Source of the DNA: Amoebophrya sp. A120
Lineage: Eukaryota; Protista; Dinoflagellata
Reading direction: 5' to 3'
NCBI GenBank assembly: GCA_905178155.1
Contig: CAJINV010000001.1
Coordinates: 10,197,432 to 10,261,431, forward strand
Length of the DNA: 64,000 nucleotides
Part shown: positions 51,208 to 56,538 of the stretch, piece by piece
How the letters are laid out: every line of letters starts with the position of its first letter
Position numbering within the stretch: the first letter of the stretch is position 1
The notes under the pieces: generated by a model
The model's input: the letters and a program-made list of their open reading frames with translations, nothing else
What the model was told of the DNA's origin: nothing
The model's database searches: none
Translations under genes and position numbers: made by a program

Positions 51208-54200
51208 ATGTCGGGGCGAAAGAAGAGTGGCGAGAATGGGCACTTCGTCACGGAGCTGCCCGTGGACGATGACGGGGGGGACAACTCTCCGGCCGTAAAA
51301 GGTCCTGCAGCCGGGCATGCACAGGCGCAGGTAAGAGCTTTCATCTTGAGCCATGTGGTCCTCGTTGGGAATAAGTAGTAGAAAAAAACAACGGGAGGTA
51401 AAAATATGATCCATACCGTAGAATGCGCAAAGTAAATGCAAAACAGAAAGATCTCCATCTCGATAAACTACAAGTCAACTGGATCTGGAACTTCTATCAG
51501 GTCCAACGAGCCATGATGCAGGAGATCCAGCAGACTGCGGACCAGGCACCACCGGTCACGGGGTCCGGCACCCAGATTACCGCAAGGGAATCTGAATATC
51601 AGCAAAAGCGACTGGAGCGCGCATTGTCACCGCCACGGGCAGATCCCTTCGCGCTCTCCACGCCGGCGGAGGGATTGACGACCTACAAGGAGATCATGGA
51701 GAATAACGCAGCAGAGCGAGAAAACGCGGAGCTGCGGAGGAAAATCCAGAAGATGCGAGAGGAAAAAGGCGACACCCAGTTTGCAGCAGATGTGAACGCA
51801 AACATGAAAGCCATGCAAAACGGAAGCGCGCCCGGCGCGAACAAGGCAGTCGAGGCACAATCAAGAAAAAGAAATCGCTGGGACACCCCGACGGAAGCAG
51901 GTAAAAATGATCGGAGTCCGCTATTAATGATATACGTACTGCGTGCCATGGCCAACAAATTCATGATTACAATCTATCGTTGTTGCTCTTCGCTGTTGCC
52001 GCTAGATACTACGAATGCTTGAAATGCCATGCAGAAACAAAATCAAAAACAAAATCCTCATGACGATTATCGCCCCAACAAAACAGCGATGATGGACACA
52101 CCCGACGAGATGGGCTCGGCCCCCGGGCAAGAAACTCCAGACATGAATGCTATCGGTGCCACCCCCGAGATGGGCGCCTGGGGCGAAACACCCGCTTCCA
52201 TTGACGTGTCCAAGCCAAAAAGAAAGCGCGCGAGATGGGACGAGACCCCTGGAGAAGGCGAACAGCAGATCACGCCGGCACCCGCTGGCGGTGCCGACAT
52301 GGCAACCCCGGTGTCCGGAGGCGACCTCGGCGCGACCCCTGACGCCGCATTTATGGGAACCGTCGGTACCCCCGTTGGTTTAACCCCCGATATGATGACC
52401 CCCGACCAGCTCCAGCAGTGGCGATTTGCGAAGGAAATTGACGAAAGAAATCGACCCATGACCGATGCAGAGTTGGACGAAATCTTCCCTCCAGGGTACT
52501 GAAAAAAAGAACAAACATCATACGTGAGTGCTATGAACTTCTTCAACTTAAGTCGTACATGAACAGCCGAACTACAAACAATGCACCCAAGCAGGAGCAG
52601 GTGAAACAAGAATAGATTCTTTTCGTCGCATTACTTAGCAACTGATGAAAAAACTAAAACAGGTACGAAATCGTGCAGCCCCCAGCGAATTACGCTCCAG
52701 CAAGAAAAAACGTATTCTCCGCACCAACCCCGGGGATGGCAGCGACCCCAGGGTTTATGATGCCCGGCACCCCCTCAACCGGTGACGGTATGACGCAGGA
52801 CAGCGGGCTGGGAGAACTTCACGGCGTTACGGCCGCGGTAAACAGAGTCGCGTCTTTTTCCGTGATTCTTTTTGGCTGCCAATCTGTACTTTGTACTTAC
52901 GCGAGAAAGATTTTTCAGACCATGTCTGTTTCGAAGGTCATAGTCGCAGACATTCACAACGCTATTGAAAAATTAAACCAAACTTCAGACTGGCGACATG
53001 CCTGAGATCAAGGCGGAGGATCGTACGCATTTCGCGCCACTGCTTGCGGGCGACGACGACGACGACCTGGCACCGGAAGAGGCCAAGGAGCGAAAAATCA
53101 TGAAGCTTTTGCTGCAAATCAAGAACGGCGAACCGGCGATGCGAAGACGCGCCCTAAAGGAGATCACGAACAAGGCGCGGGAGTTCGGTGCCGGGCCGCT
53201 TTTCAACCAGATCTTGCCCCTTATGATGTCCTCCACGCTCGAAGAGCAGGAAAGGCACCTGCTGGTAAAAATCATCGACCGGGTGCTGCACCGACTGGAC
53301 GACTTGGTGCGCCCCTACGTGCACAAGATTCTGGTCGTGGTCGAGCCGCTCTTGATCGACGAAGACTACTACGCCCGGGTGGAAGGTCGGGAGGTGATCG
53401 CGAATCTGTCGAAAGCCGCGTATGCTTTGCAAATATGTCTGGGTCTGGAAACTTGTAATGCTAAAAGGGAATGATAGACGCACTGCAATACGCAGCTACG
53501 CATAGCAAATTTTTCGGCTGCCATGTCCTACGTATTCTGCATGGCAAACTGCGTTTGTGCATGACAGGTAAGAGGTCCTTTTCGTGCCTATGCAACACAG
53601 ATTCTCGAGTCATGCTAGACAAGCACGACAAACTTGCAGTCTTCCAGACCCAGACACTTTTGCATTTGATACCGCGGGCCTGCCGACGATGATCGCGACC
53701 ATGCGGCCAGATATCGATCACGTCGACGAGTACGTCCGAAACACCACCGCGCGGGCGTTCGCGGTTGTCGCGTCCGCGTTGGGAATCCCAGCGTTGCTGA
53801 TGTTCTTGAAAGCGGTGTGTAACAGTAAGAAATCATGGCAGGGGAGGCATACCGGGATCAAGATCATCCAGCAGATCGCCATCTTGCTAGGGATCGCGAT
53901 ACTGCCGCATTTGAAGCAGATGGTCGACATCATCGCCCCGGGGTTGTCCGATGAACAGCGGAAGGTGCGAACCATGACGGCCTTGGCGTTGGCCGCGCTG
54001 GCAGAGGCGGCGACGCCATACGGCATTGAAGCCTTCGACTCCGTCTTGCGACCGTTGTGGAAAGGTAAAGCCTTCTAATGGTGGGCTTACTTGTTTGCTC
54101 CTTTGCATCTTTTGCGATGCTGGACCTGCATGATAATATTTCCATCGAAGAGTTGTGACTAGTTACTAACAAGAAGTAGACTGCGAAAGAATGTGGAACC

Positions 54201-56538
54201 TGGTGGAACTGAAACAAGAATCCCACTCGATTTTCATCCAATTTTTTTTTACCTAGGTATTCTCGAGGCCCGCGACAAGGATCTCGCGGCTTTCCTGAAA
54301 GCCATCGGTTACATCGTGCCACTGATGGACGCGGACCACGCGAACCACTACACAAGAGAGGTGATGATCATTTTGATCCGCGAGTTCTCCACCGCGGATG
54401 ACGAAATGAAGAAAATCGTGCTGAAGGTGGTGCACCAGTGCGTCGCCACCGAGGGTGTGGAGTCCAATTACATCCGGGAGGAGGTGTTGCAGCCGTTTTT
54501 TCGAAATTTCTGGGTCGCCCGAATGGCTTTGGACCGGAGAAATTACCGCCAGCTCGTGGACACAACAGTGGAAATCGCAACGAAGGTAGGCGGCGCGGAA
54601 GTCGTTGGGAAAATCATCGAGGACTTGAAGGACGGCAACGAACTGTATTGAAGTGCTTTGTCATGATGTTGTATCTTTTCTTAATCTCTGTTTAAAGTGC
54701 GGCGTAGGTCTTCTTGCTCGCCATGATTAGCTATTCTACCAATAGCTGCTTGACGCTCTGCGTCACGGCCAGCCTGCTCCTTTTAGCATGGCAAGGGCAA
54801 ACTGTATAATAAACCCGCCCACTTTTAATACTTCAACATTCTATTAACCCCAGGTACCGCAAGATGGTTATGGAGACCATCGATATTATTGTTCAAAACC
54901 TCGGCGTTGCGGATTTCGATTCCCGCCTGGAAGAGCTCCTTGTCGACGGCATTATCTATGCGTTTCAAGAACAGTCCACCGAGGACACCACGGTCATGCT
55001 CAACGGCTGCGGGGCCGTGATCAACTCCCTGGGCACTCGTGTGAAGCCGTATTTGCCGCAGGTCGCGGGTATTGTGCGGTGGCGGCTGAACACCCCCAAC
55101 CCGAAAGTCCGACAGCAGGCAGCAGACTTGATCGCCAGGATAGCAGGCGTCATGAAGCAGTGCGGCGAGGAACAGATGCTGGGGCACTTCGGTATTTTTT
55201 TGTACCAATACCTCGGGGAAGAGTATCCGGACGTGCTGGGCAGCATCTTGGGAGCTTTGAAGGCAATCGTGAATGTAATCGGGATGAACAAGATGACGCC
55301 GCCGATCAAGGATCTGTTGCCAAGGTTGACGCCGATTCTGAAGAACAGACACGAGAAGGTGAGGAAGTTGTGGTCTCTCTATTGTTTCTTGCTGTAGTAT
55401 CTCGTAAATACAAATCTGTAGCGTGGTCATGCTTCTCCGGCTAAGGGGTTTTTAAGATTCGACACAGACTTCAGGCCAAAGCCGAAGTGCTGGTAGAAAA
55501 AAGTGATACCAGCAATCATCAATTCCGAATCGACCATAAAATGCAATACAGGTTCAGGAAAACGTGATCGACCTTGTTGGCCGCATTGCAGACCGCGGCG
55601 CAGAACTGGCCCCACCGCGAGAGTGGAACCGAATTTGTTTCGACGTCTTGGAGCTGCTGAAAGCGCAGAAGAAGGCAATCCGGCGCGCGTCTGTAAATAC
55701 CTTTGGGTACATCGCGCGCGCGATTGGGCCGCACGATGTGTTGTCCACCTTGCTGAATAACCTTCGCGTGCAGGAGCGTCAGCTGCGTGTGTGTACCACG
55801 GTGGCCATCGGGATCGTTGCGGAGACGTGTAACCCGTTCACGGTACTTCCCGCGATGATGAACGAGTACAAGCAGCCGGATTTGAACGTGCAGCACGGTA
55901 TCCTCAAGTCCCTATCCTTCATGTTCGAGTACATTGGCGAGATGGCAAAGGACTACATCTACGCAGTCACCCCCCTGTTGGAGGACGCGTTGCAGGATCG
56001 AGACGCAATACACCGACAGCAGGCCATTTTCGCGACGACACACTTGACGCTAGGTGAGTTGTGATGTTGTAGTTTTCTTCTGTTTTTTTTCACTGTTCTC
56101 AACTTTTGCGGCCCGAAAATTCGCCAGATTCATCACGTTAAGGTTCATTTCTCAGTGAATTAGCTGAACAAGAAATAAAAGTATGCAAAGAACCAAAATT
56201 GTTTGACGAAAAAAAATTTCGCAGGTGTCTATGGAATGAATTGCGAAGACGCGATTATTCACTTAATGAACTTCGTATGGCCTAATCTCTTCGAGTCGAC
56301 GCCGCACTTGATTCAGGGTGTCTACAACTGCATTGATGCCTTCCGCACGACGCTCGGGCCAACAAGGATCCTCCAGTACCTGATGCAGGGTCTGTTCCAC
56401 CCAGCTAGAAGGGTGCGCGAGGTCTACTGGAAGCTTTACAATAACATGTACATCGGCGCGCAGGAGGCTCTGGTGCCAAGTTTTCCGAAACTTCCGGAAC
56501 CAGAGTACCATAGATGCGACTTGGAAATGATGCTGTGA
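51208..56538 (+). CDS. SF3B1: Splicing factor 3B subunit 1 ~1211 aa; exons 51208-51330, 51501-51900, 52087-52495, 52663-52837, 52989-53420, 53677-54064, 54257-54644, 54854-55358, 55552-56053, 56225-56538
   Basis: RWDETP ULMs and TP repeats; EIDERNRP; HEAT motifs [44 protein letters not shown] and [10 protein letters not shown]. Confidence 0.97.
53421..53671. mobile_element. Introner non-canonical intron E10 inside SF3B1
   Basis: IR TGCAAATATGTCTGGGTCTGGAA / TTCCAGACCCAGACACTTTTGCA with TAT...ATA ends; perfect DR CCGCG; removal restores the conserved NLSKAA|[14 protein letters not shown]. Confidence 0.92.

Follow-up and report, generated by a model that had tools for sequence, protein, structure and literature searches.

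The splicing-factor gene SF3B1 in Amoebophrya sp. A120

The window, a stretch of 64,000 nucleotides of DNA from the parasite Amoebophrya sp. A120, contains a gene for the splicing factor SF3B1. The features of the gene that are considered here are as follows:

51208..56538, + strand: SF3B1 gene, 10 exons, with eight GT-AG introns and one non-canonical intron; product P0378 (1211 aa)
53416..53671, + strand: non-canonical intron, 256 nt, CC..TA ends with a 5-nt positional ambiguity; joint 53415>53672 present in X1 and X4 contigs
53672..54064, + strand: exon 6, in which E622, R625, N626, H662, K666 and K700 are retained and A660G and Q699R are lineage-specific
54065..54256, + strand: GT-AG intron 5' of exon 7, 192 nt, splitting the Gly734 codon (G|GT)
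54257..54644, + strand: exon 7, corresponding to human residues 734-863, from HEAT repeat 6 onward
54645..54853, + strand: GT-AG intron 3' of exon 7, 209 nt

The translations of all exons occur exactly in the NCBI protein P0378 ('unnamed protein product [Amoebophrya sp. A120]'). This database protein was used for the full-length comparisons, and searches from the window were performed exon by exon. A search of the PDB revealed human SF3B1 as the best match, with residues 152-1200 of P0378 aligned to human residues 279-1290 (E=0, 1532 bits), and yeast Hsh155 is likewise matched with an E-value of 2.5e-282. The precomputed Pfam families of P0378 include PF08920 (SF3b1 family), and exons 2-3 encode two motifs of the U2AF-ligand type, 'RNRWDTP' and 'RARWDETPG', which align with the 'RWDETP' repeats of the human protein. 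By homology, P0378 is a member of the SF3B1/SF3b155/Hsh155 family and a predicted core subunit of the U2 snRNP. The gene identity, the exon 7 assignment and the human numbering proposed in the sequence-only reading are all borne out.

The gene is single-copy, with one match in the A120 genome, and is expressed, as spliced contigs were found in two runs (X1 and X4). Eight of its nine introns are ordinary GT-AG introns. Both joints of exon 7, 54062>54255 (GT..AG, cut +2) and 54644>54854 (GT..AG), are present in spliced contigs of both runs, which confirms the exon border in cDNA-like sequence. The intron-less X1 and X4 contigs show 0 mismatches to the genome across 54255-54644, and the mRNA therefore has the same codons; no sign of editing back to Gly is found in these spliced contigs across exon 7.

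Two aspartates in the HEAT-repeat-6 loop

At positions 54257-54310 the window reads G|GT ATT CTC GAG GCC CGC GAC AAG GAT CTC GCG GCT TTC CTG AAA GCC ATC GGT. Four codons of the loop are central to the analysis:

54268..54270, + strand: GCC, Ala at human H738
54274..54276, + strand: GAC, Asp at human G740 (P0378 D649)
54277..54279, + strand: AAG, Lys at human K741, retained
54280..54282, + strand: GAT, Asp at human G742 (P0378 D651)

A phmmer search against the PDB aligns exon 7 residues 3-130 with residues 737-864 of human SF3B1 (5ife_C) in a gapless manner. In the full-length alignment of P0378 the loop, set against its human counterpart (PLWKGIRQHRGKGLAAF), is gapless over human residues 735-751, and the alignment is anchored on either side by PLWKG and LAAFLKAIG. 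The loop thus differs from the human one by G740D and G742D, on both sides of the retained K741, and by R736L, Q737E and H738A. It has R-D-K-D in place of the R-G-K-G/V of nearly all eukaryotes. Sequence, frame and alignment agree with the two aspartates and the H738A change first noticed in the letters of the window. The positions equivalent to 740 and 742 in yeast Hsh155 are 409 and 411.

Conservation of the loop positions

The columns of the loop were counted in 266 further SF3B1 sequences in which the motif context is intact. Position 740 is Gly in 258 of them (about 97%), the remainder being S (2), E (2), A (2), N (1) and R (1), and position 741 is Lys in 262. Asp at 740 is absent from this set and from about 80 metagenome loci covered by an alignment-based scan. 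Position 742 behaves differently, with V in 118, G in 111, T in 10, S in 9, A in 9, D in 2, C in 2 and E in 1 among the residues found; Val is the residue of plants and Plasmodium. An acidic 742 occurs in only three of the 266 sequences, two of which are truncated SF3B1-like copies from Capsicum. The two sites are therefore not equivalent: 740 is a near-invariant Gly, and 742 is a variable position at which only the acidity is unusual. The sequence-only reading had placed the two glycines on a par, which does not hold for G742.

Exceptions at 740 do exist, with Glu in the metagenome fragments P0239 and P0363 and Ala, Ser, Asn, Arg or Thr in others, but those with a nameable source are truncated extra copies rather than a sole functional gene. 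Gly740 is accordingly a conserved, not a defining, feature of SF3B1, and D740 leaves the family membership of the A120 protein intact.

All 22 other myzozoans, which include Hematodinium, Oxyrrhis, Perkinsus and core dinoflagellates, have Gly at both 740 and 742 and His at 738, and apicomplexans keep Gly at 740. The motif RDKD, whose occurrence in species with canonical introns had been raised as a point to check, is not common in them, and D740 is absent from all other sequences sampled. Because Hematodinium, Oxyrrhis, Perkinsus and the core dinoflagellates keep both glycines, the comparison of sequences places the origin of D740 and D742 on the Amoebophrya branch, where they are derived. No SF3B1 of the Amoebophrya type was found among the 80 metagenome loci of the alignment-based scan, and an earlier metagenome scan gave no matches. 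The nearest fragment, P0151, is 82% identical and has the lineage motifs VVHQC, NFWVA and GYIVPLMD in common with A120; it begins exactly at L743, so that positions 740 and 742 fall outside it. The best metagenome match, L007, was rejected as an Amoebophrya-type sequence, being a core dinoflagellate transcript that is ~90% identical to Scrippsiella and reads GICEHRGKG.

Other residues of the hotspot pocket

The hotspot and RNA-path contact residues E622, R625, N626, H662, K666, K700, K741, D781 and E783 are all retained in A120, as are K1071, R1074 and R1075 of the hinged pocket for the branch adenosine (KKAIRR, exon 9). The retention of E622, R625, H662, K666, K700 and KKAIRR had been noted from the sequence and is upheld by the alignment with the human protein. 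The changes are found in residues that flank these contact residues: A660G, Q699R, G740D, G742D, P780A and E782D. The Q699R substitution places an extra positive charge next to K700.

In an alignment of 79 non-redundant full-length homologues, 113 columns are at least 95% conserved, and A120 breaks three of them (A660G, G740D and E980Q). Two of these three breaks, A660G and G740D, lie within the hotspot pocket. The HEAT region as a whole carries 61 lineage-specific substitutions, and the Amoebophrya proteome is reported to be fast-evolving (Farhat et al., PMC7789003), so that some changes at conserved sites are expected. Lineage-specific changes are found at 7 of 34 positions beside pocket contact residues as against 52 of 562 elsewhere, a difference that is marginal and was tested post hoc (Fisher p=0.04).

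Partners of the pocket

In the human spliceosome the hotspot pocket is occupied in turn by the acidic loops of DDX42 and PRP5/DDX46, by the C-terminal tyrosines of SUGP1 (a predicted contact), and by the intron downstream of the branch site. [quoted passage not shown] Hotspot mutants of SF3B1 disrupt SUGP1 binding, and predictions place SUGP1 Y644 and Y645 in contact with K741, K700 and H662, the Y644-K741 contact having been obtained with AlphaFold-Multimer (PMC10760632). The sequence-only reading had assigned the two positions to a SUGP1-binding surface. The tie is indirect: the predicted contact of Y644 is with K741, and the direct experimental datum found for G742D concerns PRP5/DDX46.

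A six-frame, exon-by-exon domain scan of the A120 genome, in which hits are lower bounds and absences provisional, detected no gene that combines a SURP with a G-patch domain, as would be expected of a SUGP1-like protein. SURP (PF01805) was found at one locus only (G000:C2, about 5.60 Mb), which is assigned to SF3A1 because PRP21_like_P lies downstream. The three G-patch matches are on contigs or at positions other than the SURP locus. With no detectable SURP and G-patch gene, the argument moves from an adapted SUGP1 surface to a pocket that is possibly freed, or adapted to other partners. An orthologue of PRP5/DDX46 is present in A120 (G000:C3, about 1.5845-1.5910 Mb), as indicated by a KH_12 match and by DDX46 as the best PDB match; its long, low-complexity N-terminus gave no alignment with the SF3B1-binding motifs of the human N-terminus.

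A proposed change in proofreading

More than 60% of the introns in Amoebophrya A25 and A120 are non-canonical, and hairpin introners have been described (Farhat et al. 2021, PMC7789003), in agreement with the non-canonical intron load supposed from the window. In the same study U1 snRNA was undetected in both strains and 83 of 89 spliceosomal proteins were detected; SF3B is nowhere mentioned in its account of the A25/A120 splicing machinery (PMC7789003).

The presence of Asp at the near-invariant position 740 suggests that the SF3B1 hotspot pocket probably functions differently in A120. In the proposed mechanism, two carboxylates would flank the retained Lys741 in the middle of the 'RNA path', the positively charged cancer-hotspot pocket. 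The Asp pair is expected to weaken or re-tune the contacts of the pocket, as human G742D does for PRP5, and the early proofreading of the branch site and 3' region via this pocket would be altered, probably relaxed, in the Amoebophrya lineage. Relaxed proofreading would suit a genome in which >60% of introns are non-GT-AG and neither U1 snRNA nor SUGP1 was detected. We consider the chances that the RDKD loop alters, and probably relaxes, branch-site and 3'-region proofreading in Amoebophrya to be a little short of even. Weighing against it are the retention of every direct contact residue, the range of residues that position 742 accepts in nature, the many lineage-specific substitutions of the HEAT region and the ordinary GT-AG type of eight of the gene's nine introns. 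A more far-reaching version, which we regard as unlikely, holds that the sole SF3B1 of A120 is a fixed natural equivalent of the oncogenic alleles that disables or re-tunes proofreading of the PRP5/DDX46 and SUGP1 types, the relaxation helping one U2-type spliceosome to accept a majority of non-GT-AG, pyrimidine-poor introns. The causal tie between RDKD and the non-canonical introns is a hypothesis drawn from a single lineage, and the hairpin non-canonical introns may instead be defined by their own structure, with no role for the SF3B1 pocket.

Alternative explanations

The substitutions could also reflect neutral or compensated drift of the lineage, with the aspartates tolerated through compensating changes (Q699R, for instance, or changes in partner proteins), splicing through the pocket essentially unchanged, and no tie to the non-canonical introns. 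This is conceivable, if rather doubtful. The HEAT region with its 61 A120-specific substitutions, the rapid protein evolution of Amoebophrya, the natural variation of position 742, the scattered exceptions at 740 and the charge placed beside K700 by Q699R are all in keeping with drift, and it is a familiar phenomenon that the normal residue of one species is a disease allele in another. Against it stand the conservation of G740 (97% overall and complete in the other myzozoans), the location of two of the three ultra-conserved breaks within one pocket, the truncated nature of the extra copies in which the nameable 740 exceptions occur, and the finding that changes at 740 and 742 alter function in human cells.

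An adapted SUGP1-binding surface that loosens 3'-splice-site selection dependent on SUGP1/DHX15 would account for the same residues in terms of the disrupted SUGP1 binding of hotspot mutants and the tyrosines predicted at K741, K700 and H662. We judge it quite improbable, as the sole SURP gene detected is SF3A1 and A120 perhaps has no SUGP1 to bind; moreover, PRP5/DDX46, DDX42 and the intron use the same pocket, and SUGP1 is not the sole candidate partner. An artefact, be it an error of assembly or sequencing, a misplaced exon border, a pseudogene or a second, divergent copy, has a negligible probability. The reading frame runs uninterrupted through 1211 aa, the NCBI model has the identical sequence, and the anchored, gapless alignment argues against such an origin; the spliced contigs from two runs, the single genomic copy and the identity to the NCBI protein rule out artefact, paralogue and mis-splicing.

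Significance

SF3B1 is the splicing factor most often mutated in cancer, and it is debated whether its hotspot pocket enforces the fidelity of branch-site and 3'-splice-site choice through SUGP1/DHX15, through PRP5/DDX46 or through direct contact with RNA. Acidic residues fixed on both sides of K741, in an organism whose introns mostly depart from the GT-AG rule, provide a viable natural context for the function of the pocket. If the more far-reaching version of relaxed proofreading holds, A120 would represent a natural experiment on the purpose of the SF3B1 'cancer pocket'; if they are neutral, the near-invariant G740 is still not structurally indispensable. Such a dispensability of G740 would bear on the reading of G740E and G742D as change-of-function alleles and not as folding defects.

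Comparison with known systems

A precedent for non-canonical introns alongside changed factors of 3'-end recognition is Fritillaria borealis, in which 95% of introns are non-GT/AG (PMC13326754). The changes in this species are duplicated, divergent paralogues of U2AF1 and U2AF2 and altered m6A patterns of snRNAs, and they were shown experimentally; its core components are described as preserved, with nothing reported on the SF3B1 pocket (PMC13326754). Plants and Plasmodium, with the motif RGKV, resemble A120 in departing from Gly742, which is not universally required. Unlike A120, they keep G740 and a neutral residue at 742, and in none of them does an acidic residue at 742 accompany a residue other than Gly at 740.

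The closest likeness is to the human mutations G742D (found chiefly in CLL) and G740E, which affect the same two positions of the HEAT-repeat-6 loop flanking K741 and make the same change from Gly to an acidic residue. Both belong to a tested panel of change-of-function alleles (PMC7960499). The A120 protein differs in carrying G740D where the human hotspot allele is G740E, and in neighbours (R736L, Q737E, H738A, A660G and Q699R) unlike those of the human hotspot alleles. Human tumours, furthermore, carry a single heterozygous allele beside the wild type, whereas in A120 both changes occur together, in the germ line, and are fixed in a gene that has no second copy.

Gene structure and transcript evidence

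The SF3B1 gene of Amoebophrya sp. A120 comprises ten exons. Two public runs, X1 and X4, supplied intron-less contigs that match the exons with 0 mismatches and define their joints. The exon 7 border given in the sequence-only reading agrees with these cDNA-like contigs. The first intron (51331–51500) was placed from the NCBI protein P0378 and a loose contig end at 51498. P0378 (1211 aa, 'unnamed protein product [Amoebophrya sp. A120]') contains all exon translations exactly and was used for full-length comparisons; window-based searches were done per exon. Residues are numbered by their human equivalents.

Features of A120 SF3B1 (window coordinates)
51208–56538, + strand: SF3B1 gene, 10 exons, joints from intron-less contigs
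51208–51330, + strand: exon 1
51501–51900, + strand: exon 2
52087–52495, + strand: exon 3
52663–52837, + strand: exon 4
52989–53415, + strand: exon 5
53416–53671, + strand: non-canonical intron, CC..TA ends, 256 nt, 5-nt positional ambiguity
53672–54064, + strand: exon 6
54065–54256, + strand: GT-AG intron upstream of exon 7, 192 nt, splitting the Gly734 codon between G and GT
54257–54644, + strand: exon 7, carrying RDKD
54274–54276, + strand: GAC, Asp at human G740 (exon 7 reading)
54280–54282, + strand: GAT, Asp at human G742 (exon 7 reading)
54854–55358, + strand: exon 8
55552–56053, + strand: exon 9
56225–56538, + strand: exon 10
52086, 52662, 52988, 55551 and 56224, + strand: pyrimidine-poor intron 3' ends, for example ...GAAAAAACTAAAACAG

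Eight introns are GT-AG and one is non-canonical. The positional ambiguity of the latter, which is removed in the spliced contigs, is consistent with a short direct repeat. Summed contig depth reaches ~200–990 over 53314–53835 versus ~16 over the exons, with numerous loose ends, which places this element in a repeated (introner-like) family. Seven of the eight GT-AG introns were sampled for pyrimidine (Y) fraction, the first being left out. The 3' regions of five are A-rich and pyrimidine-poor (Y fraction of 0.37–0.53 over the last 30 nt), and pyrimidine-rich ones (0.67–0.77) were found only in both introns flanking exon 7. This small one-gene sample suggests that the polypyrimidine tract, which the SF3B1 RNA path naturally binds, is weak or absent.

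Substitutions at positions 740 and 742

The A120 protein is an unambiguous SF3B1 orthologue. Exon 7 residues 3–130 align without gaps to human residues 737–864 (phmmer against the PDB), and in the full-length alignment of P0378 a 17-residue stretch covering 740 and 742 is paired with human PLWKGIRQHRGKGLAAF. Relative to human SF3B1, A120 carries G740D, G742D, H738A, R736L and Q737E, so that loop 739–742 reads RDKD instead of RGKG. The anchors PLWKG and LAAFLKAIG on either side, together with the kept R739 and K741, rule out a shifted alignment. Also kept are E622, R625, N626, H662, K666, K700, D781 and E783, as well as the KKAIRR pocket (K1071, R1074, R1075). The first three substitutions, and the retention of E622, R625, H662, K666, K700 and KKAIRR, had been claimed from the sequence, and both claims are borne out. 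Because the spliced contigs of both runs show identical codons, the Asp residues are present in the mRNA, and the single genomic match to exon 7 indicates that a canonical second copy is absent; the same observations essentially exclude an artefact.

Conservation of the loop

SF3B1 sequences were drawn from 1.84 billion cluster representatives, a 90%-identity cluster database, cluster look-ups of exceptional matches and 80 metagenome loci. Columns were counted in 266 non-A120 sequences with an intact PLWxG...LAAFLKAIG context, a plant-weighted sample in which most Val residues at 742 come from plants.

Residue counts in the loop (n = 266)
Position 740: G 258, S 2, E 2, A 2, N 1, R 1, D 0
Position 741: K 262
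Position 742: V 118, G 111, T 10, S 9, A 9, D 2, C 2; E, M, P, L and N one each

The proposal that two hotspots are altered stands in full for G740, which is close to invariant and where Asp is unique within the sample, but only in part for 742, a free position at which only acidic residues are rare. The metagenome loci add one Thr at 740 and no Asp, and Plasmodium, like plants, has Val at 742. The nameable exceptions at 740–742 are truncated extra copies: a Capsicum 'SF3B1-like' protein (373 aa, RGDD), a Pisolithus copy (352 aa, R at 740) and a Solemya protein (527 aa, RGKE). Two JGI metagenome fragments of one cluster, P0239 and P0363, read GALEQHEKS-LSAFLKAIG and naturally carry Glu where human has G740; their group is divergent, and its other members (P0024, P0026, P0062, P0296, P0364) read GALEHHGKG.

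Among 79 non-redundant full-length homologues (mutually <90% identical), 113 columns reach at least 95% conservation. A120 differs at three of them, A660G, G740D and E980Q, two of which lie within the HEAT 4–6 hotspot pocket; residue 660 is Ala in 77/79 eukaryote homologues. Its SF3B1 is not generally aberrant: by this count A120 ranks upper-middle, and 17 of the 79 have more than three departures.

The motif GI[CT]EHRGKG occurs in 22/22 other myzozoan sequences, comprising 14 core dinoflagellates (including Prorocentrum, Scrippsiella and Pelagodinium), Oxyrrhis marina (P0301), Perkinsus olseni, P. marinus, Vitrella, Chromera, P0293 (JGI/Logan) and Hematodinium (P0290; TSA prefix GEMP01, tied to this genus in PMC6642578). 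RDKD therefore arose on the Amoebophrya branch once this had separated from that of Hematodinium. Against this set the A120 HEAT region has 61 private substitutions, mostly conservative, in keeping with the 'rapid protein evolution' described for Amoebophrya (PMC7789003). Seven (A660G, V668I, Q699R, G740D, G742D, P780A, E782D) lie within two residues of pocket contacts, that is, 7/34 constrained positions near the pocket versus 52/562 elsewhere, a marginal, post hoc difference (Fisher one-sided p = 0.04). In exons 6 and 7, A660G, Q699R, H738A, P780A and E782D adjoin hotspot or contact residues, with the contacts unchanged; in human, Q699 hydrogen-bonds PRP5 D205.

Two short Logan/ENA fragments, P0151 and P0077, share with A120 its specific motifs VVHQC, NFWVA and REEVL (82–86% identity) and probably represent other Amoebophrya/MALV-II lineages. 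Both lie outside residues 735–742, P0151 beginning at L743. Metagenome scans yielded no Amoebophrya-type SF3B1 contig.

Ligands of the pocket and their A120 counterparts

The surface of HEAT repeats 4–9 forms a positively charged 'RNA path'. In human 17S U2 and pre-A complexes this path accommodates an acidic PRP5/DDX46 loop, and once spliceosomes are assembled it holds the polypyrimidine tract. K741 is central to the PRP5 contacts, with three hydrogen bonds, the others being R625, H662, K666, Q699, K700, D781 and E783; G742D and seven other hotspot mutants reduce PRP5 pull-down (bioRxiv 10.1101/2022.11.07.515429). DDX42 occupies the same path at an earlier assembly stage (PMC13682374). In AlphaFold-Multimer predictions the two final SUGP1 tyrosines sit on K700, H662 and K741, and hotspot mutants lose SUGP1, hence DHX15 (PMC10760632, PMC13682374). 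No SUGP1-binding assay of G740 or G742 themselves was found in the literature searched. G742 mutations occur nearly solely in CLL (PMC11874996).

Partner loci in the A120 genome
G000:C2 5599000–5602000 (L087, ~5.60 Mb): the single SURP-family locus, two SURP matches
G000:C3:1584479–1591000 (~1.5845–1.5910 Mb): PRP5/DDX46 orthologue, KH_12 match, helicase core with DDX46 as best PDB match
L092:2980–5571: first large exon of PRP5/DDX46

A PRP21_like_P domain directly downstream of SURP identifies the first locus as SF3A1, and the three G-patch matches genome-wide all lie away from it. A six-frame, exon-by-exon genome scan, which gives lower bounds only, detected neither a SUGP1-type gene nor SFSWAP or CHERP-type SURP proteins. 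The N-terminus of A120 PRP5/DDX46 is more than twice the human length (helicase core from ~residue 702 vs 314) and RS/RD- and Ala/Ser-rich, and no part of it aligns with the human SF3B1-binding motifs. It contains a possible DPLD-like helix, 'EDDDLLQFVNEML', lacking an acidic stretch upstream.

Interpretation

Two carboxylates flanking K741 are expected to make acidic ligands and the RNA backbone bind less tightly in the middle of the path. As this is the sole SF3B1 of the cell, the constraint on G740 would be either lifted or compensated. We tentatively favour the former, with early proofreading of the branch site and 3' region altered and probably relaxed, because very few columns are as strongly conserved as the one that G740D alters, A660G is a second change of this kind in the same pocket, the human alleles change function, and >60% of the organism's introns are non-canonical, with U1 snRNA not detected in it. 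A link of RDKD to non-AG introns would rest on one lineage, A120. The main rival, compensated drift in a fast-evolving protein, is a serious possibility. The sequence-only reading had centred on the SUGP1-binding surface and relaxed 3' splice-site selection; its SUGP1-centred version loses force, as a SUGP1-type gene seems to be missing, and appears improbable. The sequence finding of that reading is confirmed, and its interpretation is partly supported.

The novelty lies in a pair of acidic substitutions, natural and fixed, that fall on two sites mutated in human cancer, and RDKD SF3B1 offers a clean, testable natural experiment within the scope of one genome. Farhat et al. catalogued the spliceosomal components of A25 and A120, with SF3B unmentioned (PMC7789003). 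Spliceosome adaptation to non-canonical introns has its closest precedent in Fritillaria borealis, where U2AF paralogues and snRNA methylation changed and the core components are reported to be preserved (PMC13326754).
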